This document shows positions 1,659 through 50,353 of a stretch of 64,000 bases of DNA, piece by piece (positions within the stretch are counted from its first letter, which is position 1; each line of letters begins with the position of its first letter). This stretch comes from Laetmonice hystrix (lineage: Eukaryota): NCBI GenBank assembly GCA_965235115.1, contig OZ249445.1, forward strand, positions 2,046,001 through 2,110,000, in the 5' to 3' direction. The translations under genes and the position numbers were made by a program. The notes under the pieces were generated by a model, which had not been told where the DNA came from, made no database searches, and was given only the letters and a program-made list of their open reading frames with translations.

Positions 1659-3226
<1,568 letters not shown>

Positions 3227-3289
3227 TTTGATGCCTCCTTTGCAGCCGGTGTGTGTGACAGACAATCAACAAAGTACGTTCAGCAACTG

Positions 3290-3314
3290 GTCATATGACC
3301 CGCTGGTCATATGA
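3290..3314. promoter_or_regulatory. Two palindromic GTCATATGA(C) E-box-like sites just upstream of the cathepsin D ATG
   Basis: GTCATATGAC at 3290-3299 and GTCATATGA at 3306-3314, 64-88 nt from the ATG. Same geometry as the CLEAR motif GTCACGTGAC but with a TA centre. Confidence 0.4.
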
Positions 3315-3513
3315 TCAGCTGTTGTTGGGTCGCTTAGTGCATCAAGAAAAGTCGGCTTGCATTTTTGTCGTGAGCATTTTGACATCGAAAAATATATTAA
3401 TAATTGAATAGAAAATTATAGAGTTGTATTTTTTCTTTACTCTCATAGATCCAGTATTTCTCTCTCCCTTTCTCTCTCTCTCTAAAAAAAAAACAAAACC
3501 CAGCCTGATAATT

Positions 3514-3624
3514 AGCCTGGTTCCCCAGCCCGCCGCTATTCTCCTTGGCGCTGATGGTCGCTCGCTTATCGAGCGACCGGCCATCAGCGCCAAGGGGCGT
3601 AGCGGCGGGCAGGCGAACCAGGCT
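3514..3624. repeat. 111-bp GC-rich imperfect palindrome (hairpin/MITE-like)
   Basis: Nested inverted arms AGCCTGGTTC/GAACCAGGCT, GCCCGCCGCTA/TAGCGGCGGGC, CCTTGGCGCTGATGG/CCATCAGCGCCAAGG, GGTCGCTCG/CGAGCGACC around a 5-nt loop (CTTAT). Confidence 0.85.
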
Positions 3625-3819
3625 CTGGCGCTACCATAAAAACTTTTTTTTTTTACATTTCTTACTATTTCTTACGATAAAATAAATAAATAGGCATATA
3701 AATTAATTTTATTGGTATCTTTTGCCCCAACAATTTTTCATATATTTATATTACGAGCCTCGATAGAAAAAGTAAAAGTGCCCTTCACTCTGACTGAAAC
3801 AGGTGCTCGTAACAGAGTT

Positions 3820-3890
3820 TTCCGTAAGATGGCGCCACATAGACCGCATCACCGGAAGTAGATTTACAACACGCCGACGCCATCGTTGTT
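3820..3890. promoter_or_regulatory. Probable core of a bidirectional CTSD / THAP-SETDB1 promoter
   Basis: CpG-rich patch between divergent genes, with YY1-type AAGATGGCG (3826-3834) and ETS-type CCGGAAGT (3852-3859). Confidence 0.5.
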
Positions 3891-4701
3891 TTGTTCTTGC
3901 GTGAATCGCACAAGGCAGCATTATCTGCGTGTAGAGGTGTATCGCAAAGCTTGGCTGCACATCGAGTTAAACAGGAGGTTCTGTAATTGTTATGCAATTG
4001 ATAGGCCGAAATTTTCTCATGCACCTAACGGGTGCTTGATCCGAACAGTTGCTGCGCGAACCAAAGCCAAGTTGTGTAGCGTGCACGTTGCCGACTAGCG
4101 GACGGTGGGGGACAGACTAGCCGACCGGCGGTGGTGGCCGGCGCTCGGGTGTGTATTCTGAGAGGGGAGGGGACGCCCTCCTGGTCCTAGGTTCTGACTT
4201 GAGAGGATAAAATATTGACAGGGGTTGGCGTTGTCACCTTTCTAACTCCGCACTGGAACGGTGATCATCTACGACCGCCGGTCCTTTTACCTGTTTTCAG
4301 TGTTTACATAACCTGATGACATTTGTGACCCATTTGTGGCTGGTAATGATTGAAAAAGGGACTTTTTTTGTTTAATTTGTGAAATTGGCATCAGTGTCTG
4401 GTCCCCACTGTCTATCAATGACTTCATATTACAATAATTTTGTGCACCCTCAAATTTTTTACCTTTTCTAACTCTATCACATGAAAACATTTTTTCCACT
4501 TGGCACTTTTTTTACCGTTTTAAAGTAGACCAATGCTGCATAGTTGTTGGAGATCTGGTGATAAGACATTGACATTATTTGATTGATCATAATTGATACC
4601 CGGTACATTGCCTTGTTTCTCATGCTGGAAACGCTGCTATTGTTGGAATCGACAAGACGGACATCGTTGCTGAAAGTAATTGTAACTGTTGAACAAAAGC
4701 C

Positions 4702-4960
4702 ATGGTGAAATGTTGTATACGAGGTTGTCGGAGCTCATCAAAAAATGTCTTCAATGATGCTGTCCGCCTTCATCGGTTCCCCACAAAGAATGAGGAGTTA
4801 CGACGGAAATGGATTAAATTTGCTCTTCGATCTGGAACCAAAATTTCAAAGCTGGATATGAGTGACCGTAACAACACAAGGATATGCAGCCAGCATTTTA
4901 GAGATAGAGATCGAAATGCCAACCCAGAACCATCCATATATCCACCAGACCTCACCCTTG
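4702..4960 (+). CDS. THAP (C2CH zinc-finger) domain exon; probably spliceable to SETDB1
   Basis: MVKCCIRGC...LHRFP...RRKWIKF...RICSQHF...PEPSIYP carries the THAP invariants (C-x-C, P, W, CxxHF, terminal AVPTIF-like box). Strong Kozak GCCATGG. Donor CTTG|GTTAGT at 4960/4961; unspliced it stops at 4965. Confidence 0.9.
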
Positions 4961-5930
4961 GTTAGTAAATGCCATGGTGACCAAGGATATTGTTTGTAGC
5001 CAATGTGTTGTGTGGTTTTAGTATGTACTTTGTAATAGCACAAGAATTTTACCTAGTAGTTGTATGTGTTAATTAGTCTGTGCATGAAAAAGCTGCATCC
5101 ATGTGACCATGTATGTATTTATTTGATCTTTTTTTCACAGGCATGCGAGGGCATCATGATATACATGTTGTATTGCCTTCAGTATACAGGATGTAACATA
5201 GTTAAGGAAATGTGATTACCACTATTTGCTAATTAATTCAAGAAAAAGTGATTAGTATATAGTAAAATTTGACAAGCAAAATCCGAAGCAGTCACAGTTC
5301 TACAGTGTGGCATTTCATAAAAATGAACTGGCCCAAATCTTAGTTTTTAAGTTGCCCTTGGTCCACTGGATGCAAAAAAAAATTGTAAATATTTAGCCTC
5401 CATAAAGTCATACATTCCTTTTAAGTCATAGATAGAAACATAGCCAAAACAATCAGTAATGAAAAAATATTAATCAGTAGTAATATTAAGCAACCTGCAT
5501 GTTGTTTCTTCTTGTTCTGTAGTTGTAGAGCCTTAACTGACTGTCTTGTGATTATTCATAACCATTCATCCAAGTACTAGATCTTTGCAATTGCAATCTC
5601 TTTCACTTATAACTGCCTTCAGTGCCCAACCAGTAATATAGTGTATGGTTACATTAGGACATTTTTTATAATAGACCTGTTTTCCATTAATGTAGTGCCA
5701 TCTACACTGCTGCTAAGTGATGCTCAAGAAGGGCGGGGGTGCACAAGGGGCCATGTGGACCTCACTGCCCTGCTCATAGTGGGTGGCAGTGTTGAGCAAA
5801 CCTGGGATTTAGGGTTTCTCTTTCTAGTGAGCAGTGCAGATGGTCAAAACTGATATGTCAAGATCACAAAGTCAAATTTAAAAAAAATTAAACTACTGTG
5901 GTATTAATTTCCCCATAGGCCTGCACCATA

Positions 5931-6176
5931 CTGCCGTGAAATGACAAAAGGAAGCAAGTCCAAAAGTTCAAGTTTCAAGAAATGGCCATAAACAAGTTGT
6001 CTCTACAGTGCAGTTGGATGGACATGCTTCCTTCTGTCATGTGACTGATAGCTTCATAGAAGGATGTTTAGCAGTACACCCATTGATAGATAGGGCTTAC
6101 TTCCCTGAATCCAAATTTACACTTAAGTCGATTTTGATGAAAGTTGGACTTGCTTCCTTTTGTCATTTCACGGCAG
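5931..6176. mobile_element. MITE between the THAP exon and the first SETDB1 exon
   Basis: 33-bp perfect TIR CTGCCGTGAAATGACAAAAGGAAGCAAGTCCAA (5931-5963 / 6144-6176), flanked by direct repeat CATA (5927-5930, 6177-6180). Confidence 0.85.
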
Positions 6177-6312
6177 CATAATACTAAGCAGTGGTGCAGG
6201 GGGGCCATACAGGAGTGGAAAATGGTGTTTTAGAATATATACATGTAGTGTTGAGCCCAAGGTCTCTGTGTATGTTTCAGTGGACCTGGAAGAAGGGAGT
6301 GCGGAAGCCAAG

Positions 6313-9300
6313 ATGGCAGCCTCTCTAAATCAGGAAGAGGAGGATCTGGCTGGGGAGTACCGTATAACGGGGGTGACATCCAGCTTAGAGGAACTTATCG
6401 ATGCCAAACTCACAGAACTTGACTTTAGCAGCTTAATCAGTGACAGTATTAGTAGGCTTGAAAAGAAGGTTACAGAAGAGCAGCGTGAGTTGTACATTTG
6501 TTTACATTTAGTATTGTTACAAGAATAGATGATGGGTGCCCTTAAATTTTAAATATCTAGTTATTATATAATATATAATAAGATAGAATTATAAGTATAA
6601 ATATATTATAATCCTTACCAGACAATAAGTGACTTTATACTGGGTTTTTCTAAGGTTTTGGTGCCAGTATTTGGGGAAGGAATTGAGAAGTTTGTACGAA
6701 GCTGGCCAATGTCTTAGTTAAACCTCTGTGTTGTACTACAGGAAAGGCCAGGATGGTGAGCAAAATCTTTGCTGATTGTGAGAAGCAGCTGAAATCTTTT
6801 CGTCATGTACTCGAGCAGGAGCAAGATATTGAGACGTAAGTTGGGTGAATCTTTGTTTGAGTGTTCTAAAGGGATGTTTAGAACTGGAAGAAGGGTGCTC
6901 AAGAATAGAAATGTTAGGTTATAGGTATGTAATGGGATGGCTCTCTTCTACTAGTAGACCTGTATGGAGCTATATCACAGGTTGTATCAAAAGCTTATCA
7001 GTGTCAAAGTGTTTCTAATCCAGCTCTGTGAAAGATTAGGTCTGTAATTCATCCTAAAGAATTTTCATTTATTTCCAGACCAGAAATTATTCCCTCCGGT
7101 TCAGACTCGGATGATGATGTTCAGTTTGTTCAAGCAACATTTGAACCAGGTTTTACACGAACAACTAAAGCAACAGGAATGACAAGGTGTGCCCCTTTTT
7201 CTTAGTTCTTAATCAAATCTGTAAAGTTTTTATTATTATTTTGGTATTTAAACTGACTTTATATGATGTAGTTTGTGGAATAATTTGAGCAAGTCACTCT
7301 TATGATAAGATCACGTGTATGGTTGTAGCAATATCAGATTTAAGCTCTGTTTTGATGGGGTATCAGACCCCCACCAGGTTCAATGATGGTGCGTAACAGC
7401 AGAGGGCAGCACCACTACTACATAGCCGGGACCTCAGACAGTGGCCGAATTGTCATGAGACAGGCAAGTGTAGGCTCTAAAGACATGGCAGCCTCGCTTA
7501 GATCTCAGCCCCACTCTAAACAGGTAAGACAAACACCTGATCCTGCTAGAATGGAATGTGTGAACACCTGTTCACATCAGTGACTCTACAAATATTCACT
7601 CTTTATTTTTCATATTATTTTGTCTGCTTTCTTTAGTTCCGTGCATTTTCTCTTTTTTCCATTTAGATTCAGAGCAGACCTTCATTTTATGTCATTAACA
7701 GAAATTGCATTCAGCTATTTTTTGTTTCGTTGTAAAGTCTAGAATAATGCCTGCTGTGAAGAGATGGGATAGATGCAGTATGTACAGTGCAGTCTCATTT
7801 TGTAGATAACAAAGACAGGCCATGTGATAGGGGGAGATCCTGATCTCATCGCTGTCTCAGGCCCACAAGTATTGCGACCCTTGACCACAATTCATGCACC
7901 ACCTCCAAAGCAAATGTGAGTCGGTTGATTAATACTTTACATTATATTCAGCTGCCTGTCAATGTGTCATACGACACAGAAATTTGTCAGGACTTTGGTA
8001 GTTTCAACAAAGTGAGAGATGTGTTTCAGGGACAGGATTTTTTATAGCAAAGATGTGCATACATAGATTGTGTACCTGGTCGCAAGTCACAAAGTCTCAA
8101 GAAAATCAAAATGAAACAATGGAAAAAAGTCTTTAATGTAACAATTCCACCATTTTCACTTTCACTCCTAGATTTTCAGCCCTTTTCCTGAGGTATGGTT
8201 AGGGAATAATAAAGGAAAGGCTATGTTGTGTTTAGTTACATAACGTTTCATTCCAGTTTCTTCACACCAATGTTCATACTTAAAGGCTTTATGTTCCAGT
8301 TTCAGCAGTTTATCATTACTTTCAAAATAAATACTTGTAAATATGATGCCGTCATTACATGCACTCTGTTTGTAGTGACCTTGTGGTTGGAACAAAGCTT
8401 TATGCTAAGAAATTCAACGACATTTGGTACAAGGGAACTCTGATGGAAATTGTCAACAAGGATAAGTCTCGCAATGAGGTAACAGTTTGTCCAGATAATT
8501 TTATAGCCAGCACCTCTGATTTGGTCATTGATAAAATGGAACCCGGTTGTATCCTTTATCTGTGTGTTCTATATGATGAAGTAGTTTCAGTGGTGATATA
8601 TTAAGATGTTACTGTGTCTTTTAGTGGCATGTTACATATAAAATAAATAATTATAATCAAGGAGTTTCATCTCACACTTTTTTTTTAGTGGAAGTACAAA
8701 GTGAAGTTTGACGGGAAAGGATCGAAGGTTTTACCTGGCAAACAGGTGGCATTTGCTGACAGCCCCAAGGACACCTTGCCTGTGGGTAGCAGAGTAGTAG
8801 GTAAGTAAATATGGGAACATTACACCAATGTACTCATTACATTTTATTATCATGTAAGCACCATAACTTCATTTAATGTGAAAAACTATCAGATTTTGTG
8901 TAGTTAAAAAATTGTTGATATTTTTACTGTTACTGTCAGGTTGATGATGCTGAAATTAACTGAATGCTTGGAATGTTTTGGGGATATTTTGTTATTGTGA
9001 TGACATTCTTTCAACACTTTCTGTTACAGCACTGTACAAAGATGAAGAGTTGTCAACAGCAGCATCCTACTATGCTGGTATTGTGGCCGAGTCTCCCAGT
9101 GTGAGGAATACACAGAGGTATGTTGCAGATTGTTCTGTCGGGCTCCCTCTGTTTTTCAAAGATGTCAGCACTGCAGAGGGATAGGGGGCAAAAGGTTTAA
9201 AAAACCACAAACAAGTACTTAAAGTGGTTTAGTTGGAAGCCATCAGGGCCGGTGGTGAGAGTGTAATTTTAATTTTGCTATAAATTTGCTTTTTACTAAC

Positions 9301-12300
9301 TGTATGGTTATTTTGACTTTACAGGTATCTGGTTTTCTTTGATGATGGCTATGCACAGTACTGTTATTCAAGGGAACTCCACAAAGTGTACGAACAAAGT
9401 AAGTATATGTATATAGCAGATTTAGATAAGATAATGGGCTGAAATAAAACCTTGCAAAATGGGTAATTAAGTAAATACTGTACATAACTTTATTTGGATT
9501 CTGTGTGGATGAGGCAAATCACCTAAAAGCTGCCGATGCTACCTTGAAAGTGATTGAATTCCAATCAGCCCCAACTGTTGTTGCTATGGGGTTCTCGCGG
9601 CCATCATCATAATAAAAAATAAATAAAATAAAATTTAAAAAAAAATAATTAAAATAAATGAATAGTTTTATTTAGAACAACCAGTGTTGTTGAGTAATGT
9701 GTGACTGTAGCCTAAAAATTTGTTAACTTTGACATTGAAACATTTCAGGTCGTAATGTCTGGGACGACATCCATCCAGATTCACAAGAGTTTATCAAGAG
9801 TTACCTCAAGCAATATCCTGAGGTGACTGTTATATTTACACAGCGCTATTTAATCTCAAATTTAACTTGAATGTGGACAGACACAACAGTAGCTTGTAAG
9901 AAGGTGTACTGAGTAAGGATAGTCATGGTCTTGTCAGAAACTATGCATTTAATTACAAATGGGAATATACCTCTGGCCTCATCATTTCTTTTTCATTTTC
10001 AGCGACCAATGGTGCGCCTGCAGCCTGGTCAGGTCATCAAGACGGAGTGGAAGGGTCGTTGGTGGACAGCTCGCGTACAGGTTGTTGACGGTAGCCTTGT
10101 AAAGATGTATTTTGATGCTGACAAACGTGTGGAATGGATCTACAGGGGCTCAACCCGTCTGGAGCCACTCTACACTGAATTGGTACAGTAAAAGTTCCTC
10201 CTCGGACATGTGTGCACTCACTATGTACAGTTTGATGTGTGTGCACTCACTATGTGCAGTTTGACATGTGTGCACTCACTATGTGCAGTTTGACATGTGT
10301 GCACTCACTATGTGCAGTTTGACATGTGTGCACTCACTATGTGCAGTTTGACATGTGTGCACTCACTATGTACAGTTTGATCTGTGTGCACTCACTATGT
10401 GCAGTTTGACATGTGTGCACTCACTATGTACAGTTTGACATGTGTGCACTCACTATGTGCAGTTTGACATGTGGGCACTAACTATGTGCAGTTTGACATG
10501 TGTGCACTCACTATGTACAGTTTGACATGTGTGCACTCACTATGTACAGTTTGATCTGTGTGCACTCACTATGTGCAGTTTTGACATGTGTGCACTCACT
10601 ATGTACAGTTTGACATGTGTGCACTCACTATGTACAGTTTGATCTGTGTGCACTCACTATGTGCAGTTTTGACATGTGTGCACTCACTATGTACAGTTTG
10701 ACATGTGTGCACTCACTATGTGCAGTTTGACATGTGTGCACTCACTATGTACAGTTTGATCTGTGTGCACTCACTATGTACAGTTTGATCTGTGTGCACT
10801 CACTATGTACAGTTTGACATGTGTGCACTCACTATGTACAGTTTGATCTGTGTGCACTCACTATGTACAGTTTGACATGTGTGCACTCACTATGTGCAGT
10901 TTTGACACTAGAGGTACCACAGAATTTGGTGGCTGTGGGTGATGGGGCAGGGTTAGGGTTTCTGCTCTGTTTATAAAGATATCCTAAGGGGAGAATGGTA
11001 ATGTAACATGTTAACATTGCAGGCCAATGCTGAGTTATCAAAGACACAAGGGAAAGGTCACAGACGACATAATCTGAACGTGAAGAGTAACAAGAAGCCC
11101 CTGGTGGAGTACCTGAGGGGGACCGAGGAGGATTTCATGAGGCGCAAACAACCAGGACATATGGGCCAACCACAGCGCAAACATCCAGGTATGTTAGGAT
11201 AACATTGCACACCAAAAGGCAGCAAAGGTTCCGTGCTTCAAGACTGGTCTGGTGGCACTTCGTTCGCGAATCCTAGCCATTTTATCTCATTGAGGCCTAC
11301 AGTAAGGAATTATGATGGAATTAATATCTGTGGTCAGTTCTTGATGGTAAGTCTTGGACAGTGTGCATTGTCAGGAACTGTAGTAGATTCTTTTACTTCT
11401 AGTTGCATATCACGGGCCTCAAATGACTGGAGAGCAACTGGTATGTTCCAAGTTGCCTGCGGTCAAGCCTGGAAATATCTACCAGGCTGGTAGCCCTGCA
11501 TCCAGTATTCACACCACCCACCAGCGTGTTGTGTTTACTTCAGGCCACACCACCCCCAGCCCTGCCTCCAGACAGCACAGTGCTGATGGCACACCACCCA
11601 TCACAAATCTCAATACCATCAAAAAACGACCGGTCGCCAGGAAGAGCACCGCTAAGAATCAGCATAATGAGTCTTCAGGAGAAAAACGGCACCGTAAGAA
11701 TGTCTGTTACATTATATGAAAACCAAGGAGATGCTAGAGAACCTGAGGCGACATCTAGCAAATAGATAATTACCAGCCGTTTATAAATGTGCTTTGAAAT
11801 CGGCACTTCATATCTCCAGTATCATTTTATGCATTTTATTTTATCCATTTCAAAAGCATTTCCACGTGCATGTTTTATCTAGATGTTGTAATGCTTTGTG
11901 ACATGCTAATTGATCGAAATGGCAGGAAAGAATTTCTTGCATTCTTGCACATCCATTTTTTACTTTGTTATCTCAGAATATCATGCCAGCAGCCTGAGTC
12001 GTAATGCGGTGGGCCGAGATATGGCTTCAGTTCTCCAGGATAGGCTGGCCAATGAATTCGCTGATGGTACATATCTTTTATTCAAATAACATTGGTATCA
12101 GACAACCAAAACATAATTAAAACTGAGTCGTTGATTGATCAGGCAGTTTAGATCAAATGAAGGATTCTGGTTCAGTGTTTAGTATATTAAAGGTAAAAAG
12201 TCGGATTGCCTTTTCCACCATTGGTTGATGTTATTTAAGCATGTATTGTCAAATTTTTCAGATGAGGAAGCCCTAGGAGAGAGGATGCAAATAGACCGTG

Positions 12301-15300
12301 GATTAGTGATGATGGCACGTAAAAAATACAGTAAGTGATATCAACAAATCTATTATCTCTATTTTAACATGGAGTGTGCCAGTCTAAACCATACCTGGTG
12401 TATTTATTTAAGCTGTTGATTGATGGTCTATGATGTTATTCTTCAGAGGCCCATGAGTGTTCACATAACTGCCTGAAGGAACATGATGACAATCCCATCT
12501 TATACAAGGGAAATAACCCACTCATTATACCCATGCTGTGTGGCTGGGAAAGGTAAGTTATACAGGATGGATTCTTAGGTCTGGCAATGAAAACCAAATT
12601 CAAAAATATGGATGTATACAGCAGGAATACTGCTGGAACTAATATTAGTCATTTTGGTGGTCGAGTGTAAATACTAGAACATTACAGGAGAATGCTTTGC
12701 TGGCATATTGATCATGATGGTCTAGCCTAAAGTCTCAGTACAATTCAAGCATTGTAGTGAAGCACTGATGAGAAAAATCTTTTACAATTTTCTGCTGAAG
12801 GTCACTATGCGACATCAGAAAAACGTATAACATTTCATTCTGTAGTCGGATAAGATTTGTGCATTTATAATACAGTCACGGTTTTTTTGGAATTGACTTT
12901 TTTGTAACATTTTACAGTAATTAATTTTGCTGGGTGTTTGTTGTTTCTTTTTTTTTCTTCTTTTTTTACAATTAATCTAATCAGAATTGAGCAAGAGGTT
13001 TTTGCTACTACTATATGTTACGTAGTAGCTGGATATATACTCTGCAGCTGATGTCTTTCTCCAGGTTACCTGAATCTTGGAGCAAATTTCTGATTTCTGA
13101 TTTAATGAAAATACCTGGTAACAATAACACAGTATTAGTGGCGGTAAAGACAAAGCTGTCCAGAATATTATATAATCTCTAGATCTTAGCACTTGCATAT
13201 TAAAGTTTTTAGACAGATTATCCAAATTTAGGGTATGTACAAACTGTGGTATCTTGGTAAAAGCCAGGGTTGTGGCTACATTGTCTTTATCACAGACGGG
13301 AAAATGAAGATGCAGGTACTTTTTGCAACAGGCAAATTGCACGACAGAAGAACACGGGCAAGCGTGTTGTGGCCTATCGGGCTCCGTGTGGACGCCGACT
13401 GAGGACTATCAAGGAAGTCCACAAGTATCTCAGTCTCACCGACTCATTACTCACTATTGACCTCTTCTGCTTTGACTCCAACCTCCACACACACTCGGAG
13501 TTTGTCCCAATCAAGGTGCGTGTGATAAGTGTTGTTGTTGCCCAGGTTTAATCCAACCAGTTTATGACTGTTTCTGGCCTTGGACACAGCTGTGGTGTGT
13601 TAAAGAGAATATTTTGAGAATTTCTGAGAAACACTTACATTTTACATAGCCTAAGTACTATTGTATTGATGAAGGTATAAAAGTTATTTTTACTCTAGAA
13701 TTTAAAAAACAACAAAAACAAAGCTGTAGAACTGCAAAGCTGTTTGAAGCCCAGTTAAATCCAAGTGTTGCCTGTAATTTATTATTTTACTTAGAGTGGT
13801 CTTAATTGAATTTGTTTTGTATATTCAGACATTCTGCGACATCAAAGATCTTTCATATGGCAAGGAGAATGTGCCAATTTCATGTGTGAATGGAATTGAC
13901 AGAGCTTATCCAGATTATGTAGAATACTCCAATCAGCGGATCCCAGCCAAGGGAGTTGTCCTTAATTTAGAAACAGACTACCTCATTGGCTGTAGCTGTA
14001 CAGATGGTTGTATCGTAAGTAGTGCTAATCAATCTCCTGTATTTGCTGATGTTTCAAGATCATTTCAGTCTGATTCTGAAGGCTGCAGCGCATTGGCCTG
14101 ACTGACTGCTTTTTTAGGGGAGAAACGGTTCATGTTGCAGTTAGTTTTTTATAAACGTTAAATATACATGAATGTTGGAACAGTAATGATAACAAAACAT
14201 ACCTATAGAAGAGGACCAGTTTTAAATGTGCCTCTTTACTTGTGTCAATTTAAAGGTGCTATTCGTGAAAAAAAGTTCAATCTTTTTATTTTTAATTTTG
14301 TTGACGTTTATGTGATCCCACCTATCATGGAAATAGATTCACAACAAAGGAAATCAAAATTTTTCATGGATAACGGCACAAATGGGGCTCTCTCAGAAGG
14401 CCTGTGGAGACCCTGACACGCCCCACCATAGGAAATGGCTCTATCTCGGTGCGCACCGAGATAGGTTTCAAATGCTGCACACAAACTAATAGAAGGTTTA
14501 TCAGGCCAATGGTATCGGTAGGAATTGTTTCTAGTACTATGTGCACAATGTATGATAGGAGAAATGCCATTCTGTGCGAGACGAATAGCACCTTTAATGG
14601 ATGCTTGTATCTAATAACAACGCTTTACTGCGAGTAATTGTGAAATGTGTTTGCCTCCGCAGGACCCCACAAAGTGTGAGTGCGCTCAGCTGACGATAGA
14701 GGCCAGCAAGGCCAGCTCAGCATCCCGACCTGACGGCAGTCCTGTGGGTTACCAGGAGCGACGCTTGATGGAGCCGGTCTTTACTGGGTATGTTTGGGGC
14801 ACACTGAACCTTGTCCATCCATTCTAACAGCAATTGTCATTTGGGCTGGGATGTTATGCTGATGTATTGGTAAGTACCAGTTCTTGTGCACCAAACACTT
14901 AATTGATTGTAACTGAGTGAATAATTATTGCGATTTCTTTGCAGGATATATGAATGCAACTCAAGGTGTAGGTGTGATCATCGATGTAATAACCGGGTTG
15001 CACAAAATGGACTCCAGCTTCGCCTTCAGGTGTTCAAGACAGAAAAAAGGTGGGCCTAGGTTGAGAAGAGTCGACTCAAAGCCGAGTGTTGAGGCATATT
15101 TAGGGTTTGGCTATTTTGTTTAAAGAAACTGCATTGGTGAAGTTGATACCTGAGTAGCTGTCATCTGCTAAGTGACAAGTTAAAAGGTAATCGTTGAGAA
15201 ATCGTGAATTTTGTGTATCAGGAAGTAGTTTGCACAGAAATTTGGAACATTATCATGTTGTCTCTGATTGTTTTTGTACAGCCTGTCAAATTCCGTGATT

Positions 15301-18300
15301 GTTGCAAGGAAATTCTGTTTTGAAAATGAGAATATCTGGGTTTTTTTCCATTTCCACATTTTCCTCATAAAAACAGTTACACTGATGTAAACGGACACTG
15401 ATTTGGGTCATACACAAAGCATTTCTGATGATGTGACTCACTGTTTCAGAGGTTGGGGATTGCGCTGTCTTGATGACATCCCAGCAGGTGGTTTTATTTG
15501 TATATATGCTGGACAGCTGTTGACAGAGCAAGGTGCCAACGAGGTAGGTAACATGGTTCAATGATACGAAATTCTACATGAGGCTTTTATTTTTCCCATT
15601 GTCAAATTTTTGGGCATTTTTTGTCATTTCCAGAATTAATAGGCAACCTTTCAATTTTCAATCCACCCTGCAACCTGAACTTATGTGCAATATACTTTTG
15701 TGCTTTGGCCCAGAATTGGCACAAGTGTACTTTGCATAAAAATGTCTGAAAATAACTTGTATTGAAGGATGGACAGCAGTATGGAGACGAGTACCTGGCC
15801 GAGCTGGACTACATTGAAGTGGTGGAACGTATGAAAGAAGGGTACGAAAGTGACGTGGATCCCAACATCGATGAAGGAATCGGGAATGATGAGGATGAAG
15901 AATCAGACGATTTCCAGGGTGCATCTGATTCTGACAGGTACTGAAAACACTTTTCTTTTTACAAATTTGTTGTGATGTGTATCAATTATAGTTTGTATTC
16001 CCTCAAGGTGCCACTCAGACATAGACATCGTATTATTGCCATCAATACTATTTCAATCCTTGCCAGGTATTGTTTTTAGCCCCAACCCTAAAAGGCGGGG
16101 AATTCCTATCGTCCTCCCTCATGTATCATGGATGCTCTCACATGGACATCTATCTAAAAAATACAAAGTATGCATAGTTCCTGGACCCACAGATAGTTAG
16201 TCCCTGCCCAGTTGGAGGATGGGGCTTGTCATGTGGCTGAATTATTCAGGAAATCCAAATTTGTGTAAGGACATGTGTTTTGTGTTAGTGATGCTCAAAG
16301 CACAGGCAGTGGTCTCACTGACAAGACCTCAAACAAGAGCCGTACAGAGACGTGTAGTATGGAAGGGTAGGTCACAGCATAGCAAGGTTTAACAGGCCAA
16401 ATGTGTCGTTAAGCAGTTCACGTCTATCATTGGATGGTGATAAGGCATTATCAGCTGCATAATATGGACATGTTGACTGATATAAAGATGCAAATTTCAT
16501 TCTCACATAATGTACTTCCTCACATGGCATCATAAAATGGAAATGGCCTAGAACTGGCCCATTGAACAGTTGATGATGTCTAGTCATATTTTGTTATATA
16601 ATTTCTATTTAAATACGTGTTGTTGTTTCGGGGGCCCAGCTCATGAATAAATTAATACATTAGAATTTAAGTGGGTTAGAGATTTATTGAAAACTTGCTA
16701 ATGGAAATTTAGAACAAACCTTTTCACTCTGATCTGGGCCCTGATAGTGTTTATATTTCTGTTACAATTTTTGCTTATTGCAGTAGATTAAATGAAGCTT
16801 TTAACCTTTAAGTTGTTGATTCACATAAGTCTTTCCACAAAAAGAAAATGAAAGGTTTAGTGTTTCATCAATATTAAAAATAAATTTGATTTGAGAATTC
16901 AGTTACAAAATTAAAATAAAGCCAATTCTCTCCTCGCTGAGATGTTTTGGATCAAATGCAAAAACAGTGCATAAATTATGTTGTAAAATGATGAGCATTC
17001 CCCTCTTTCTAGAGACCAGGAGGATATTTCCAGCAAAGATGGTTTTATCAGTACATTTTGTTTAAGTGTTAAGTTGCTTATTTCATTATTTCAGTACATT
17101 CTCTGGTGAGAAATACCTGGGGAAAAGTGGTGCCCATAATAAGTCTGGGTAAGTAACGACAGGACTGGTCCTGAATCACTTAAAAACTACTCTTTCTCAT
17201 CTTAAAATACCGAAAATACTTCTCTGCTAAGTTGTAAGCATTCTTTTACCAAAAGAATAGTGTACAAGTGGAATTTATAACCATAAAAGTTGCATCTTAT
17301 ATATTGACCTTATACCTTGACTTTACTGCATTGGTGTATTATTTACAGCTGTGTACTTTATTGTGTTTTGTTTTACCTGTCAGGAACCGGAGAAAGTCGA
17401 GTGCAACTGGAGAGAGTCAGGACCAGTCTTTGTCCACCAAGATCGTTTTGAAGCGTGATTCTGGGGCAGATGACCAGGATAAATCCTGGTGGGTAAACGT
17501 GTAGAAAGAGATGTCTTTGACATTCTTCATCTTTGATGTCTTTTGACTTCTGTAAACCTGTTTTTGCATGAGAAATTTTTAAGGCATTGCTGTGAGATTT
17601 GAGGTAGATGATTTATAGCTATATATTGCAATAGCACCATAGCAAAAGGACAATACAATGAGCTACATGCATACTTAGATTTCATGGCAAAATAAACTTC
17701 AGTATTTTTTTATTTCTCTTTGATACACCTTCAAGGTCTGTACGAATGAAAGGGATCAGTCCTCAGAAACAGACAGCTGAGTGGTTGAAGAGTATCCCAC
17801 CACCACCCAGCCTGGATGCCATCGTAATCAGTGATGAAGAGGATCCATATCCAAGGGCAGCCCTCTACATGGGGCCCAGCAAGAAACCAGAGGCTGCACT
17901 TAGTAAAACACCAGACAGTGAGAGTAAACCAGAAAAGGAAGCTGAAACAAGTACCGATTTAAAGGAGAAACTGACACCATCTCCAGCAGAAGGCGACACA
18001 ACTACTGCTGAGAGAGAGAACGTTGACGCTGGATCCGACAAGGAGGGTGAGAGTAAAAATGAACAGGAAGAGGATGAGGGTTTAGTTCAAGATAATGTTG
18101 TCACTGTCCCAGACAGTGATCACAAGGACTCGTCTGTGTCTTCTCACGATAACGGCTCTGATCTCGACTCTCTTGGTGAGCACAAACTGGATAAACCCGT
18201 CAATTCGCCTCCCAAAAAAATGTTCCTTAAATTAAAAACCAACATTCAAGGAGACATGAAGAACAAAGGTTAGTATGAATGCTTAGCCATAAACGCAATT

Positions 18301-21300
18301 TGTAGCCCCACATTTATAACTACTTTCCAGTAGTATTTTCTGTATTTTCATTTATTAATTTGTAGCTATGTACCCCCGGTAATAATACTCATGGTTACAT
18401 TTGAGCATGTGCAAATGTACTGTGTAGTCTTTGGTTTTCCTCTAGACAGCATCACTTTTATTTAAGTGTATCTAATGCCATAGCTTTTGGTTTTGTCTCA
18501 ATTCTTCCTGCCAGTAGAATCTCCTTTCAAGTCTGAGATAGATTTTAATCGTAAACCTCTGAGGATACCAAGGATAAAGGACAAAGCTACGCATCATTCT
18601 TTTAATACATCAGGTAAATAGCGTGGCTAGAATCCAGAATGATAGCTCATTTTTAAATGTTACAAGGTGGTGGCTTTTTACATTAATAATCTAACTGGAG
18701 CTAAGATAGGAACTGTAGGCCTAAGGTGTGGTTATGAGTTATGTTGACTTAGGCACCCTAAGGGGCCGTTCAAAAATTACGTAACGCTCGGGGGGGTGGG
18801 GGGGTGTATGTCCAAACGTTACGGACAGTGCTGAAGTACCATTGCAGAGCGTTACGGGGGGGTGGGGGGGTGTCAGATTTGGCCCAAAATAGCGTTACGT
18901 AATTTTTGAATGGCCCCTAACCTAGGCATCCATAGGTCTGCATGGTTTGTATGCCTCTGGATGGTCTTCAGGTAGAGCTAGCATCCATTGGTAAGTTTGG
19001 TATTCAGGGATCATATACCCTGGCATGTGACGGTGGTCCATGTACCTTTCGATGATTTTTTTTTTCCAGTAAATTCATACCATATGCCTATGGACCTACG
19101 GATGCCTGAATGCATAAGTCTTTCTTGATTCTGTATAAGTTCAGGTTGATGTTTTATAAGGCTTTGGTGTTGGATGATGTTGAAAATATGTATCTTAACT
19201 GGGCTCCCGCTTGCTGATATTTCACTTGAGCCACCGTGGCTAAACGGGCACCCAAATCCTGTAGCAACATAAGATTTTCTACAGCCACATTCTTTGAGCT
19301 ACAATCTGTCCAGTTGTAAATGGATATCTTTGCTATCCCGTATGCGTACATTTTAGGCGGGAGGGTCGCCCGTGTGGCGAAACAAGGGACTATTTCATGA
19401 TCATATCCTTCGCCACCTTGCTTTCTATTTCGCCAATGCGAACGTGGCGAACGGCTAGCGGAAGCCCAGTCTTAATGATTTATTGGATACTCATGACTAA
19501 GGTGATTTTTACAATAATAGCAAATTAAAGCTGGTGATTTGGTCTTGGAAATCAGGTTTGTAATGAAAGCTTGCTGGAATTTTTTCGTTCTGAGTACTGC
19601 CTTCAGACAGACACTGTATTCTGGTACCAGTAACTAAAGGGCTAATCTGGAGGCAAAGGTTTATTATTTAGGTTGGCTCTGGTGGAGACATTGTCATTAA
19701 CTTTGTCACTACAGGTGAGGTGGATAGTCCCGATACCCCATCCACGCCAGCAAATGTGGAGGAAAATCTCGACATCCCCAAGCTGATAGGTGGGCCAGCC
19801 CTGTACTGGGCACGTCATTGTTAACGTTAACCTGCCTCACTCAGGGTTCCCATCCTGGCGGGGAAAGGGTAAAAATTTCTGTCATGGAAAGCCTCAAAAT
19901 TGAAAAAGAATATCACACATTCCCAATTGTGGTTTTATTTCCAAAGAAAGCTTTAAGAACTAAGTCATTAAAAATGATGGAGTGAGAAACCTGACTTTGA
20001 GTGGGAACCCTGGTTGCTGTTCCTGCCATTGTATGGCCCTTAGACTGGACCTTACAACTCTCACAGACTGCTTAGTTGTAACAATAACATCGGTATATGA
20101 GCACAAGGAATGCCCCTCATACTAATAACCTTGGACTTAACATGCCACGTTAACAATGTCTTCCTGTTTTCATGTGCATTTATTGATTAAGTTTCTATTA
20201 TAAGTGCAAGTAAATTTGTGTAATGAAAGTCACATTTTTGTGTTAACTAAGGTATTTACAAAGTTTTTCATGTGATAATCCCCAGTGTTTTATACTTGTG
20301 TATGTCTAATGAAAAGGCATGTTGTATTTTGTTATTTTTTACAGAAGCACTTGAGTCCGAGGATTCTCAGGACGTTCTGCCAGGACAGACAGATGGGCAG
20401 GATGATGAGAAGCCAAAAGAAGATACTGCACCACCCCCTGCACCTCCTGCACCAGCACCAGCACTACCACTACCAGCACCACCACCAACTGGTCCAGAAA
20501 GTGCTGATGGCAATAATAGTGACAGCAAGGACGGATTAGGTACGGAAGACCCGTGGTGCCACGCGGTTGATAATATCTTTTCTGGCGACCGCCACATAAT
20601 TTATATCTTGTTCAAAGATCCACCTAGTTTCATCTTTGCTTACTGGGATAGAAGCTGATATCTGTGAAATGTTTAAATTTTTTAGGATCATACTGTCTCA
20701 AAGTATTCCCCCACTCCATGTCACAAAGTTGAAGGACAATAACAAAATACATTGTATATATATAAAAAAAAAGGCTGCAATGCATGCTTAGTCTACTTCA
20801 TTTAGAAGGTATACATGTAGATATGAGATAGATATGGTGGCTACATATTTTGTCTTTTTCATGTCACTACAACAGAAGAAAATGGGCTCTTCAAGCGAAC
20901 CACCAGATCACAAACATCCCGCTTCCGGGACCTTCCTGATCCTAAGTCTCAGCAGGTGATTTCACCACTCAAGATAAAGTTATCAACCATGGAGATAGAA
21001 GGAAGGGAAGGAGCTAAGGAAGACAGCAAGAAGGAGGAGAAACCAGGTAAGGAGGTCCACCTGATGGATGTTACTGCAGTACGCCGCTACATTGAAACCA
21101 AGATTTGGGCAATGCCTTAGGCCTACCCTGGGCCCAGTTTCTCAAAAATTCTCAACTTGAGTAAAGCTTACTTAAGTATAATCTAACAGGCTTCTGATTG
21201 GCTGGTTTGCTTGCTATACTCAAGTTGAGAATGCTCAGGCACCTTGACTTGTTGTCATCTAACTAATATGAGATGTGTTAACTAATGATGTGTTAACTGT

Positions 21301-22311
21301 TACGAGATGTGTTAACTAATACCAGATGTGTTTCTTACGTCATCTAACTAATATGAGATGTGTTAACTAATGATGTGTTAACTGTTACGAGATGTGTTAC
21401 CTAATACCAGATGTGTTTCTTACAGCAGACAAAAGCATCACAGTGGAGGGAGAGGACCTCTTCAGTACCAGGATGTATTTTGGGGAAGAATTTTGCTATG
21501 TAATGGACGCCAAATCAATGGGAAATATTGGTAGATACCTGAACGTAAGTAACCCAAGAACATACCTGTGCCAGTTTAAGGGGAATAAAGATGGAATTAC
21601 AGATAATATTATCAGTAAAGACCAACTTAGATTTGTTATAAAAATAGTTGTAATATTGATATGTAATTTGAAGGAAAGTATGGCATGATTCCTGCTGAAA
21701 TATAAGATGCAATGTAATCATTTCATATGTTTCATATTACAGCACAGCTGTGCACCAAACGTATTTGTGCAGAATGTGTTCGTGGACACTCACGACCTGC
21801 GATTTCCATGGGTTGCATTTTTTGCTGGACAGTAAGTGTTTAATTTAAGTCTACAATGTCCCAAAAATGTAAAGTCAGACAGTTTGCCTAAGTAACATTG
21901 ATTTTTTTACACTCCTATGAAGGCTAAACCATATACCGCAGTATGTGGTACACAGATAGAGATAATTTAAGTTACAGCAGTCAAATGACATTTTATAATT
22001 TTTATTGAGCTATACGTTATGCAGGAAATAGTAAACTTGTAATCACAGTGAAAAATTTCTTCGTTGTTGAACTGTACGGTAATGAATTGATAGCCATAGG
22101 TATATTACAGAAAAGGTTTTTCCCGTAAATATATTGAATTTTAAATCGTAATGATGCCAGGTATACAGACAGAAATGTGTGTGTTGGTTTCAGGTACATC
22201 CGTGCTGGGACAGAGTTGACGTGGGACTATAACTATGAAGTGGGCAGTGTTCCGGGCAAAGTACTCTACTGCTACTGTGGTGCTGCCGAGTGTCGTGGCC
22301 GCCTACTCTAA
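6313..22311 (+). CDS. SETDB1: Histone-lysine N-methyltransferase SETDB1/eggless, 33 coding exons, 1496 aa from ATG 6313 (1593 aa if THAP-fused)
   Basis: Exons: 6281/6313-6484, 6742-6835, 7079-7186, 7367-7523, 7806-7915, 8376-8478, 8689-8800, 9030-9117, 9325-9398, 9749-9822, 10003-10182, 11023-11188, 11403-11693, 11977-12066, 12262-12330, 12447-12552, 13332-13515, 13829-14014, 14663-14787, 14945-15049, 15450-15543, 15768-15937, 16289-16366, 17095-17148, 17384-17488, 17736-18268, 18518-18613, 19715-19789, 20345-20539, 20876-21046, 21426-21544, 21743-21831, 22194-22311. All GT-AG, phases match, total 4491 nt. Domain order is Tudor x3, MBD, pre-SET, split SET, post-SET. Confidence 0.96.
8376..10182 (+). 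CDS. SETDB1: SETDB1 triple Tudor exons (6 exons)
   Basis: [71 protein letters not shown]. Confidence 0.95.
10205..10906. repeat. 29-bp minisatellite, about 24 copies, in a SETDB1 intron
   Basis: Unit GACATGTGTGCACTCACTATGT(A/G)CAGTTT with minor variants. Confidence 0.97.
12447..13515 (+). CDS. SETDB1: SETDB1 MBD exons
   Basis: [13 protein letters not shown]|[33 protein letters not shown]...IDLFCFD. Confidence 0.93.
13829..15937 (+). CDS. SETDB1: SETDB1 pre-SET and N-terminal SET half
   Basis: [98 protein letters not shown]. Confidence 0.96.
16289..21046 (+). CDS. SETDB1: SETDB1 intra-SET insertion: 8 low-complexity acidic/Pro/Ser-rich exons
   Basis: Open, phase-compatible exons between the two SET halves, including the 533-nt exon 17736-18268 and the Pro-rich exon 20345-20539. 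Support is splice signals and frame continuity, not sequence similarity. Confidence 0.8.
18762..18917. mobile_element. Tourist/PIF-Harbinger-like MITE in a SETDB1 intron
   Basis: TIR GGGGCCGTTCAAAAATTACGTAACGCT / AGCGTTACGTAATTTTTGAATGGCCCC (1 mismatch), with 3-bp TSD TAA (18759-18761, 18918-18920). Confidence 0.88.
19842..20012. mobile_element. MITE with CAGGGTTCCCA termini (hAT-like)
   Basis: CAGGGTTCCCA at 19842 and TGGGAACCCTG ending 20012; no clear TSD. Confidence 0.6.
21130..21232. mobile_element. Truncated MITE/hairpin remnant
   Basis: 16-bp perfect inverted repeat ATTCTCAACTTGAGTA (21148-21163) / TACTCAAGTTGAGAAT (21217-21232), preceded by a GGGCCCAGTTTC-type end. Confidence 0.45.
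21254..21423. repeat. 85-bp tandem duplication at a SETDB1 3' splice site
   Basis: Units 21254-21338 and 21339-21423, built from GATGTGTTAACT subrepeats. Only the second unit is followed by the AG acceptor. Confidence 0.9.
21426..22311 (+). CDS. SETDB1: SETDB1 C-terminal SET half and post-SET
   Basis: [16 protein letters not shown]|[28 protein letters not shown]|...[32 protein letters not shown]; stop TAA at 22309-22311. Confidence 0.98.
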
Positions 22312-40126: not shown

Positions 40127-42938
40127 ATTACTAGTATACGTCGTTTACATGTAAACATATCTCTTATGGTATTTTTAGTTTAGTTTCCACCGTGTATTTG
40201 TGAAAGTATTGATGTTTTTGTTTCAATTGCGAAAATATTTGTCGGAAAGAGTCATCAGACAGTGCCTGGTTACAAGAAAGGTCGCTGGTGTCTGGTCCCT
40301 CCGATCTGAAAAAAAGGAATTTGAATACACTTATGCAAATTAACAAGAGTGGCGTTCAGAGACTTGAAGGGGGAGCAGGGTTCTTCCTGTTGTCCACCCG
40401 TCTCCTTCCCCTAGGGGTTCACGCGTTTGGGGGCGGCAGGCAGCACTAGCTGTCCTTGTTGCCATGCAGACATCAGCCTAGACTATACTAATACAAAAAA
40501 CTGTGCACGTATGTAAAATAATCAGTAAGTAAATACATTTAAGGGAAGTAAATGACGAATTGGAACGATGAACAAGTAAGCCAGTATAATAATATAAGGG
40601 AATTTATATTTATGTAAATCAGATGGTGAGAATTCAGCGATTACAGTTTCTTATATTGGTAGGTGTATTGAATCGATGCGTTTTCTGTTGAGAAACTACC
40701 AGTGAGTATCTTTTGATTTCTACAGTTTCCAGACTGAGGAATCAATTTACGAATCATCGACTAACGTTGGTGGGGCGTTATAAACCACTCCAAGGCTTTG
40801 TTAGACTCAGTAAGGAAGGCTACCCGTTGTGCCTTCTTTGATCGTAAATCACTTCGATTGCTCTGTAGTCGCAGTTAATTAAACCTTTTATTTCGCTGAA
40901 CTGAAGAGAATATTGGGGAGTAATTACTGAGCTGTCTGCCGAGTGAATATCTAGGTTGTGTTATTGTTTCATGATGACATGATAACAGCTCATGCCCCAT
41001 TGTTCTCCAGAAGAAAGTTTGTCTCGTCATTACAACAGTAAAAATACACCAAAAGTCTGAACTGCAGTTTGACGAGAATTCAGGAGAAATATCGGTTTTC
41101 CTCCGACGTGGATGGCTTTTATTTCAGCATCTTCTTGCATAGACACAGTTGATAGAGTTGAAAGGACAACAGCTGCTTGAGGGATGGTGGGGGTCCCAAC
41201 AGTCAGAACTGCTCCAGTGCCCTCTACCACCGTCGTAAATGTACTAGCGCTGTCGATAAGTGGATGTATTTCGACTTAGATTGGAGTCGTATGTATCATG
41301 CCACCCTTTGGCCCCGTGACCATGACACAAAGTGGTTATTGGCCCTTTCATCAGGCCAGAACACTTTCCTGAGGGCTTAGTTTACAGCACTAGGGAATTG
41401 AAGAATGTACCAAGAAAGTGGAGAGTTCTAGCATGGTTCTGAGTGTCAGGTTGCGGACATCAGGGCGGGTATTGGGTAGAAAGATTTCGTATGGTATCCA
41501 GAGAATTTGTGACTGTCCGGATATCCCTTGTGGAGGTTCTTCCTGTCTGTTAATCATGCTCGGTGCCATCGGAAGGACAAGAAGTCGGTCGACTGTACAG
41601 GATACGGTCTGAGAAAGCGTCCTATTTGTGTTCAGGAAACTGGGCCATATGGTGATGTTCTTGGCAGACGGTCTATGTTATTTCTAGGAAATGTGCTATT
41701 CTGGGGGGGGGGGGGGGGGACGTAGGAGGCTCACTGTAAGCTTCCTAGTGATAGATGTCGGGAAGTAAGGCGGGAGCTCCCGTTGAACTGGCTGTCAGCC
41801 CTGACGGTACAGAACCGGGTGGAGTGGATGGGAAGGTTGGAGATTCATCGTCTCGGGCCAACAGGAGGCCACCCAATAGGTTGGTGGAAAGCCTCAGTCT
41901 TCAGTTCCTTGTCCTAGCTGTTCCCCAGTATATAAGTGAAAGTCCCTTATCACCCGAATCCTGTTGTATTATTTCCCGGAATGCTCAAGCTACAAGTCTC
42001 CTTACAACTGGAGAGACTGAATAAGGACCTGCATGTTTGGTATGCATCGGAGACAGCAGGAGGTAGCGGAGCCCTGCCCTACCCTTCCCTCCTCCTCCGT
42101 ACGGCTAGCCCATCCAAGGGCCATCGGCTGCACAGCCCCACCGTCAGCACGGCCCGTATTCCCTGGGGCTCGTGAGGGAAATAGAGAAAATCAGAAAATG
42201 AAGATGGAACCGGGTGCAGCAGTGATAGGGCAGCTGGTGGTATATTGGCCTGTCTCTGTCGGCCTCACCGGCCAGTGTCGACGCTGCAGTCTCATTCGGA
42301 AAGCTCTGCTTTACGGTACAGCCATACGTTACATGGTGCCTTGCACCCAGGTGGGTAGGACAAATTGTTTTGAGAGACGCCAAGGTTTTACTGCGCACCA
42401 AGTCCATCACCTGACGGCCGTGTATGAAGACCCAGTCCGCGCTTATTTTAATCGCAAGATTGCGTCATAACTAGGACTGTACAATTTGCCCCCGTGTCAG
42501 GAACCTCCGGTAAATACCTCACGTAGCGACCAACCAATTGGTGTTTACGGCATGGAGTGTGTGAGTCAGGGAGATTTGGAAGGCCATTGAACCCCAGGCC
42601 ATGGTGCCCTTGACTGTGACCCCGCGCTAGGCCGGGAGGAGGCGGTGGAGGGTGGGGTATTTAGGTTGAGAACTTGGGAGGTAGGTTAGGTGGCCAGGAA
42701 GGTATTTCAGGCGGTATTTAGGGAAAGTTTGGAATTGATCAGCTGCTGTCATTAACAAGAGCGTTCTATTTCACCTGTACAAGCCCTTTGATGTGATGAA
42801 GCCAGTTACCTGCCAACCGTGGCTGGATCAATAAATGCACATAGTGTTGGCAGGGGTTCGCCCACCCGCCATCGGGATATTCCCTCCCACACGAGTCGGA
42901 TGTAGCGGTGGGCAGGCCCTGCTACTGCGCAAAGCAGA

Positions 42939-42939
<1 letters not shown>

Positions 42940-43008
<69 letters not shown>
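42940..43008. repeat. Pure (CTG)23 trinucleotide tract
   Basis: 23 uninterrupted CTG followed by CCGCCGCCA. Confidence 0.98.
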
Positions 43009-45995: not shown

Positions 45996-46822
45996 GTCCC
46001 TCAAGCTTGGTTGAGTCTGTACAGTCCCTCAAGCTTGGTTGAGTCTGTGCAGTCCCTCAAGCTTGGTTGAGTCTGTGCAGTCCCTCAAGCTTGGTTGAGT
46101 CTGTACAGTCCCTCAAGCTTGGTTCAGTCTGTGCAGTCCCTCAAGCTTGGTTCAGTCTGTAGCCTACAGTCCCTCAAGCTTGGTTCAGTCTGTGCAGTCC
46201 CTCAAGCTTGGTTCAGTCTGTAGCCTACAGTCCCTCAAGCTTGGTTCAGCCTGTACAGTCCCTCAAGCTTGGTTCAGTCTGTACAGTCCCTCAAGCTTGG
46301 TTCAGTCTGCAGTCCCTCAAGCTTGGTTCAGTCTGTACAGTCCCTCAAGCTTGGTTCAGTCTGTGCAGTCCCTCAAGCTTGGTTCAGTCTGTGCAGTCCC
46401 TCAAGCTTGGTTCAGTCTGTGCAGTCCCTCAAGCTTGGTTCAGTCTGTAAAGTCCCTCAAGCTTGGTTCAGTCTGTAGCCTACAGTCCCTCAAGCTTGGT
46501 TCACTCTGTGCAGTCCCTCAAGCTTGGTTCAGTCTGTGCAGTCCCTCAAGCTTGGTTCAGTCTATGCAATCCCTCATGCTTGGTTCAGTATGTACAGTCC
46601 CTCAAGCTTGGTTCAGTCTGTGCAGTCCCTCAAGCTTGGTTCAGTCTGTGCAGTCCCTCAAGCTTGGTTCAGTCTGTGCAGTCCCTCAAGCTTGGTTCAG
46701 TCTATGCAATCCCTCAAGCTTGGTTCAGTCTGTACAGTCCCTCAAGCTTGGTTCAGTCTATGCAGTCCCTCAAGCTTGGTTCAGTCTGTACAGTCCCTCA
46801 AGCTTGGTTCAGTCTGTGCAGT
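45996..46822. repeat. 28-bp minisatellite, about 29 copies
   Basis: Unit CAGTCCCTCAAGCTTGGTTCAGTCTGTG, with 33-bp (+AGCCT) and 26-bp variants. Confidence 0.97.

Positions 46823-49081: not shown

Positions 49082-50353
<1,272 letters not shown>

Follow-up and report, generated by a model that had tools for sequence, protein, structure and literature searches.

A conserved THAP zinc-finger reading frame in the first intron of SETDB1 of Laetmonice hystrix and its possible use as an alternative coding exon

An open reading frame (ORF) for a THAP-type zinc finger lies on the sense strand within the first intron of SETDB1, the gene for a histone H3 lysine 9 (H3K9) methyltransferase, in Laetmonice hystrix (GenBank assembly GCA_965235115.1, contig OZ249445.1, positions 2,046,001 to 2,110,000 of the forward strand; this stretch of 64,000 nucleotides is the window, to which positions refer unless a relative is named). 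The ORF carries the THAP fold signature, is conserved at the same place in a relative together with splice signals of the same geometry, and is skipped in the one SETDB1 mRNA form that was detected. Taken together, it is somewhat probable that the ORF is a domesticated THAP exon, either a cassette or an alternative 5' exon, from which a THAP-SETDB1 isoform arises beside canonical SETDB1. A SETDB1 isoform that binds DNA is a likely product rather than a proven one; from the sequence we infer the inclusion of the exon, the DNA binding of its product and the targeting that would follow. The features on which the argument depends are as follows.

About 3200 to 4400, no strand assigned: CpG island, the only one of the region (observed/expected CpG about 0.9-1.3), taken as the SETDB1 promoter.
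4100 to 4148, forward strand: 3' end of the non-coding SETDB1 exon 1 with donor CGG/GTGTGT (a slash marks the exon boundary), seen in a contig of the RNA-like run X4.
4149 to 6280, forward strand: SETDB1 intron 1, bounded by the observed junction 4148^6281 and holding the THAP ORF and a miniature inverted-repeat transposable element (MITE).
4524 to 4528, forward strand: candidate acceptors for a THAP cassette exon, recognized from the sequence (AG at 4524-4525 and at 4527-4528, behind a T-rich tract).
4702 to 4960, forward strand: predicted coding exon for the THAP zinc finger, 86 codons plus one base, ending in phase 1 (Pfam match, single copy, orthologue in the relative L007).
4961 to 4966, forward strand: putative donor GTTAGT, which includes the in-frame stop TAG; the heptamer G/GTTAGT is identical in L007.
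5926 to 6180, no strand assigned: MITE-like insertion with 36-nucleotide terminal inverted repeats (TIRs), outside the THAP unit (inverted-repeat search, read depth).
6281 to 6484, forward strand: SETDB1 exon 2 behind a TTTCAG acceptor, 204 nucleotides, phase 1 at both ends (RNA contig; homologous to L007 5031-5243 and to L018 5960-6196).
6742 to 22308, forward strand: other SETDB1 exons from domain matches (Tudor 8359-10188, MBD about 13330-13520, Pre-SET about 13830-14040, bifurcated SET 15430-22308).

The THAP reading frame and its orthologue

The ORF (4702-4965) comprises 87 codons and begins with an ATG in the context GCCATGG. It matches the Pfam family THAP (PF05485) with an E value of 2e-14 and 54.6 bits against a cut-off of 23.9, and the nearest solved structure is that of THAP11 (2LAU, 1.2e-5). 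THAP identity was judged by the C2CH pattern, namely C-X2-4-C-X35-53-C-X2-H with invariant P, W and F residues and a C-terminal AVPTIF-like box. The zinc ligands of the ORF agree with this pattern (C5-X3-C9, 52 residues, C62-X2-H65), and P27 (in RFP), W37, F66 and the AVPTIF-like C-terminal sequence PEPSIYP are also present. The complete, uninterrupted THAP domain with a strong Kozak context, which an earlier note on this DNA had described, was thus recovered. In unspliced RNA the frame would close at the TAG of 4963-4965 to give a protein of 87 amino acids.

The 627-Mb genome holds one copy of the ORF, both as protein and as DNA; the closest other THAP loci are 38% identical, and the DNA read depth near the ORF is at the single-copy level. 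No TIRs and no transposase ORF were seen with it, so that a recognizable transposon origin was not found, and the layout of P-element/THAP9-like transposons, in which a THAP domain is followed by a transposase core within flanking TIRs and several copies exist, does not occur here. The only inverted repeat nearby is that of the unrelated MITE, in agreement with the claim of the note that neither a transposase body nor TIRs accompany the THAP domain. The MITE itself has a DNA depth of about 1e5, compared with about 50 for single-copy sequence, which implies thousands of copies, and its sequence also occurs in contigs of run X4.

The Tudor_4 exon, used as a query, brought up contigs of related animals in ENA assemblies. 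One of these contigs, L007, comes from a deeply diverged relative: its Tudor_4 exon is 81% and its first Tudor exon 74% identical to that of the window, and the introns and upstream DNA of the two are not alignable. L007 has a THAP ORF at 3148-3405, on the SETDB1 strand; the exon-2 homologue follows 1.6 kb further downstream, at 5031-5243. The two THAP ORFs share 58 of 86 residues (67-70% identity) without an indel, and they have the same MVKCC start, identical zinc ligands and identical P, W and F residues; the L007 protein scores 2.4e-29 against the THAP hidden Markov model (HMM) built in this analysis. Their nucleotide identity is 60%, distributed over codon positions 1, 2 and 3 as 70%, 76% and 35%. 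Third codon positions are therefore saturated, and the nonsynonymous divergence (dN) is about 0.28. In the SETDB1 exons of the same two species, third-position identity is 41.5% and amino-acid identity is 35-87%. On these comparisons the THAP exon of the window evolves like a SETDB1 domain exon, and the ORF appears as a single-copy sequence under strong purifying selection at a fixed host locus, as looked for in host-transposase fusions. Because an orthologue without indels persists across saturated synonymous sites at a dN of about 0.28, a recent or unconstrained transposon fragment is excluded; the note had named a recent, multi-copy, unconstrained fragment as the finding that would undo its proposal, and single copy and purifying selection contradict it.

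The end of the reading frame is conserved in a way that bears on splicing. The window ORF ends in CTTG/GTTAGT, a phase-1 donor whose final exon base is 4960, and the L007 ORF ends in CTG G/GTTAGT, with the same heptamer and the same phase. This identity persists in spite of differences in the final residues, in the intron and at nearby third positions. The need for a stop codon would by itself leave the third base of the Gly codon, the use of TAG and the T that follows free to vary, and conservation of the heptamer thus favours a donor. The need for a donor would by itself give no preference for T at +3; the heptamer may have been kept both as a donor and as an immediate stop for unspliced RNA. 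A second such sequence in the window, AAAG/GTTAGT at 18268, had been pointed out in the note and is present.

Splice signals, promoter and transcripts

The downstream gene, which the note had called SETDB1, was confirmed as a single-copy SETDB1 orthologue running to 22308. Pfam matches were obtained for Tudor_4 (5e-28), Tudor_5 (1.8e-6), MBD (4.6e-10), Pre-SET (1.1e-6) and the N-terminal part of SET (2.5e-3), and human SETDB1 Tudor structures match at 3e-23. The two SET halves, at about 15430 and at 21392-22308, are split by an acidic insertion at 17746-18268, and the tandem Tudor domains, the MBD, the Pre-SET and the bifurcated SET with a long insertion that distinguish SETDB1/Eggless are all present. 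The Tudor coding blocks at 9333-9399 and 9751-9822 are split by extra introns and are contiguous in L007 (9855-9994), indicating gain or loss of introns between the two lineages.

Exon 2 of this gene begins at 6281 behind the acceptor TTTCAG/TGGACC and is open for 32 nucleotides before ATG 6313. When 4960 is joined to 6281 in silico, the frame runs uninterrupted from THAP into SETDB1 without a stop, which reproduces the phase-1 match and the open stretch up to ATG 6313 that the note had reported. The THAP ATGs of the window and of L007 both have a purine at -3 and a G at +4. In L007, exon 2 lies behind tttttgcag and is open for 38 nucleotides before its first ATG, and the THAP frame again enters SETDB1 without a stop. 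The codons before the ATG that are common to the two species read D-L-x-x-G-S-x-E-A, with the synonymous-type changes CTG/CTC, GGG/GGA and GAA/GAG; this stretch looks coding, an impression of limited weight for an acidic sequence of low complexity. L007 also has a strong acceptor, cctgtag/ATCGG, 33 nucleotides before the THAP ATG, and no upstream ATG intervenes, which is how an internal exon would look. The splice signals could thus permit in-frame THAP-SETDB1 splicing in both species. The same locus, strand, donor heptamer and SETDB1-compatible phase in L007 are what would be predicted for a domesticated, spliced exon. As an alternative destination for the THAP exon, the acceptor at 5141 named in the note was considered and set aside; it adds 18 codons and then a stop, and no conserved counterpart was seen in L007.

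The promoter places the ORF within the host gene. Over 5000-9200 the observed/expected CpG is 0.07-0.4, and no promoter-like island precedes 6281. The single island of the region precedes the THAP ORF, which places the THAP exon inside the SETDB1 transcription unit, in the sense orientation. Within the island, a near-perfect palindrome or hairpin at 3517-3621 gave sub-threshold matches to two microRNA families on both strands, and an Rfam scan of 3000-11000 returned nothing above threshold. A motif of about 30 nucleotides, CCGACGCCAT..TTGTTTTGTTC, recognized by eye at about 3868-3897 in the window and at about 2010-2040 in L007, is the only similarity seen between the two upstream of the THAP ORF, and it may be a core promoter element.

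Sequencing runs came from one specimen only. Three are DNA-like (contigs of about 520-600 Mb, introns covered), and one, X4, is RNA-like (59 Mb of contigs, exons only) and was aligned to positions 3700-9600. One X4 contig of 151 nucleotides at a depth of 5.9 joins 4148 to 6281 with GT..AG borders and 48 nucleotides on its short side; the joint is absent from the three DNA runs. Acceptor 6281 is therefore genuinely used. The visible part of exon 1 lacks an ATG in all three frames and contains a stop in the frame that leads into exon 2; the mRNA 4148^6281 therefore encodes canonical SETDB1 from ATG 6313. A further X4 piece ending at 4718 was tried as a sign of THAP-exon expression and rejected, because it maps to a different chromosome (G000:C8:24221298) and meets the window through a chance similarity of 22 nucleotides.

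From these elements a two-form model of the gene may be proposed. Transcripts would originate in the CpG island (about 3.2-4.4 kb). In the first form, which the RNA contig documents, non-coding exon 1 ending at 4148 is spliced to 6281, and canonical SETDB1 is translated from ATG 6313. In the second form, the THAP exon would be included between exons 1 and 2, or transcription would begin just upstream of the THAP exon, still in the promoter region of the gene; the conserved phase-1 donor at 4960 would then be spliced to acceptor 6281, and translation from ATG 4702 would yield a THAP-linker-SETDB1 protein. In this protein the C2CH THAP finger could give the H3K9 methyltransferase a sequence-specific DNA contact of its own, and inclusion or skipping of the THAP exon could decide between direct and adaptor-dependent targeting. 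That H3K9 methylation would in this way be directed to DNA motifs is pure inference.

Weighing the THAP-SETDB1 isoform against other explanations

Several observations weigh against a THAP-SETDB1 isoform. The sole SETDB1 transcript form detected skips the THAP ORF, the junction 4960^6281 was not seen in the RNA-like run X4, and, to a lesser degree given how thin X4 is, no X4 contig lies on 4719-5866. The fusion put forward in the note as a form of SETDB1 mRNA was thus not borne out by the only RNA contig, and the RNA reads across 4960^6281 that it had suggested as a check were not found in a run whose coverage is thin. On exon 2, X4 reaches a depth of about 6 only, and it likewise has no contigs on the constitutive exons 3-5; because it misses exons found in every SETDB1 mRNA, its silence on the THAP exon says little. 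The donor at 4960 has a suboptimal T at +3, and a cassette exon that began at the candidate acceptors of the window (AG 4524 and 4527) would include two short upstream ATGs. Among the data reached, an orthologue of the THAP ORF was found in two species only, those of the window and of L007. In the more distant relative L018, exon 2 is clear (5960-6196, 26 nucleotides before its ATG, which is 2 mod 3), and no THAP domain lies within 6 kb upstream of it; as a length of 2 mod 3 occurs there without a THAP domain in that span, the regular frame may be due in part to something other than the THAP exon. No THAP-plus-SETDB1 architecture was found with phmmer among 1.84 billion protein representatives queried with the THAP ORF, and no description of a THAP-SETDB1 fusion was found in the literature searched. 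The gene caller of the collection missed the intact L007 THAP ORF, and the absence of such a protein there is therefore weak evidence.

The stretches of exon 2 that precede the ATG measure 32 nucleotides in the window (6281-6312), 38 in L007 (5031-5068) and 26 in L018 (5960-5985); all three are 2 mod 3 and all open with D-L codons. When the THAP HMM was run over all SETDB1 loci fetched, THAP domains were found only in L007 and L014. The ORF of L014 was rejected as an orthologue, being a single exon of 195 amino acids that is 26-32% identical and has no donor-like site. It occupies 15193-15777 of the reverse strand, which is also the SETDB1 strand, and exon 4 of that gene follows about 6 kb downstream. 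The ORF adjoins ORFs of 309 and 192 amino acids without a Pfam match; together they possibly form a THAP-bearing mobile element. That another, unrelated THAP sequence should lie beside SETDB1 is a curious coincidence. In L013/L010 no THAP domain was found in 16 kb upstream of Tudor-1, where exons 2-4 were likewise not found. The L017 locus breaks off 4.6 kb before exon 4, with its 5' exons outside, and the upstream sequence of L008/L009 is occupied by a retroelement or lies beyond the locus. Judged by the sequences compared, the THAP exon is clade-restricted.

Among protein collections, phmmer gave no match to the THAP ORF above 54% identity in the same 1.84 billion representatives, and the long proteins with an N-terminal THAP domain that it matched are PRDM-like or BTB-ZnF proteins. 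A scan of JGI metagenomes with the two-species THAP alignment returned only a 40% match, and the matches in the ESM Atlas are generic THAP clusters. The combination of THAP with Tudor, MBD and SET domains is, as far as could be searched, undescribed; the novelty that the note had supposed stands to that extent, and the same searches offered no support for the fusion protein itself.

The most serious alternative, which we regard as possible but rather unlikely, is a THAP-only product that is never fused to SETDB1, made from a small gene or from an intron-retaining or alternative-terminal isoform. Its protein would have 87 amino acids, or 104 if acceptor 5141 were used, and might bind DNA on its own or compete for THAP sites. 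The self-completeness of the ORF, its strong start context and a TAG stop at the same codon in both species agree with such a product, as do the many THAP-only predictions of 83-150 amino acids in the protein library and the failure to find either the fusion junction or the fusion protein. Nevertheless, a nested gene on the sense strand requires its own polyadenylation site within the host intron, and neither a downstream exon nor a signal that is conserved was found there, the introns of the window and L007 being unalignable. Moreover, the conservation of the donor heptamer, and the fact that in both species its phase fits exon 2, would be left unexplained, and the product would be a bare finger of 87 amino acids without an effector or dimerization part.

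A constitutive fusion, in which THAP-SETDB1 is the main or only SETDB1 product, is improbable. It shares the geometry and conservation that speak for the alternative isoform, but the only form detected is the THAP-less mRNA 4148^6281, whose first usable start is ATG 6313, and the single THAP-SETDB1 protein of 1593 amino acids assumed in the note is thereby contradicted as the sole form. A non-functional relic, that is, a decaying THAP-transposon fragment that is open by chance and fits the splice frame by coincidence, can scarcely be entertained: THAP domains derive from transposases and L014 does carry its unrelated THAP ORF upstream of SETDB1 beside large unassigned ORFs, but the window ORF is single copy without TIRs or transposase and has an orthologue free of indels and stops across a divergence that saturates synonymous sites (dN about 0.28).

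The alternatively included THAP exon accordingly remains the preferred reading of this locus. Of the domesticated exon that the note had proposed, the locus, strand, donor and phase are now seen to be conserved in L007, and the fusion mRNA was not observed. We would give an even chance to the broader proposition that an invertebrate clade has evolved, and maintained across a divergence that saturates synonymous sites, an alternatively spliced THAP exon which gives SETDB1 a sequence-specific DNA-binding domain of its own, with the choice of exon switching heterochromatin targeting between adaptor-guided and direct modes.

Neighbouring features and comparison with known systems

Other features of the window lie apart from the THAP-SETDB1 question. 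Near its start, the 14-mer GTCCCGTACAACAC occurs in eight exact copies on the same strand over 1.1 kb (493-1603; 0.01 expected). Downstream of SETDB1 there are long CAG/GCT-type repeats (42880-42960), a coding-looking minisatellite (46147-46931) and an exon for a HIPK-like protein kinase with a polyglutamine run (49094-50356; Pkinase 1.3e-29).

How SETDB1 finds its targets outside vertebrates, where KRAB zinc-finger proteins are lacking, is largely an open question. A conserved THAP exon on SETDB1 suggests the hypothesis of motif-guided H3K9 methylation that is switched on by exon inclusion, and, if true, it would provide a clean invertebrate counterpart to SETMAR, with a chromatin enzyme that has captured a domain. 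Should the product be THAP-only, a conserved THAP gene in the promoter-proximal intron of SETDB1 would still suggest coupled regulation.

Canonical SETDB1, Eggless and MET-2 are recruited by adaptors such as KRAB-ZFP/KAP1, ATF7IP/Windei and the piRNA pathway. The window gene resembles canonical SETDB1 in its triple Tudor, MBD, Pre-SET and bifurcated SET domains and in its detected THAP-less mRNA, and it differs in the conserved THAP exon of intron 1, for which no counterpart was found in described SETDB1 genes.

The PRDM family and the library proteins P0113 and P0058 are like the proposed fusion in combining a SET-related domain with sequence-specific zinc fingers in one polypeptide. P0113 and P0058 carry about five THAP domains, a PR domain (the PRDM-type, SET-related domain) and C2H2 arrays, and they thus indicate that a THAP domain and a methyltransferase-like domain exist in one chain elsewhere. 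In contrast to the proposed fusion, they have PR and C2H2 arrays with several THAP domains and no Tudor, MBD, Pre-SET or bifurcated SET.

The worm THAP protein LIN-15B has been linked to H3K9me2 (PMC8552245). Like the proposed isoform, it is a THAP DNA-binding protein tied to repression by H3K9 methylation in an animal without KRAB zinc-finger proteins. LIN-15B and the methyltransferase MET-2 are, however, separate gene products, whereas here the two functions would reside in one chain, as proposed, or at one locus.

SETMAR (Metnase) and KRABINER are host-transposase fusion genes, in which a transposase-type DNA-binding domain is spliced to a host gene (10.1101/2020.05.07.082677). As proposed for the THAP locus, splice sites connect the domain with a host gene that has a chromatin or regulatory role, frequently in an alternative isoform, and the host part of SETMAR is also a SET-domain methyltransferase, as in the proposed THAP-SETDB1. 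Contrary to SETMAR, the domain here is a THAP finger and not a mariner helix-turn-helix, it lies upstream in intron 1 and would be N-terminal instead of downstream, and the host is the H3K9 enzyme SETDB1; furthermore, neither transposon remains (TIRs or transposase core) nor a spliced fusion were observed at the THAP locus.

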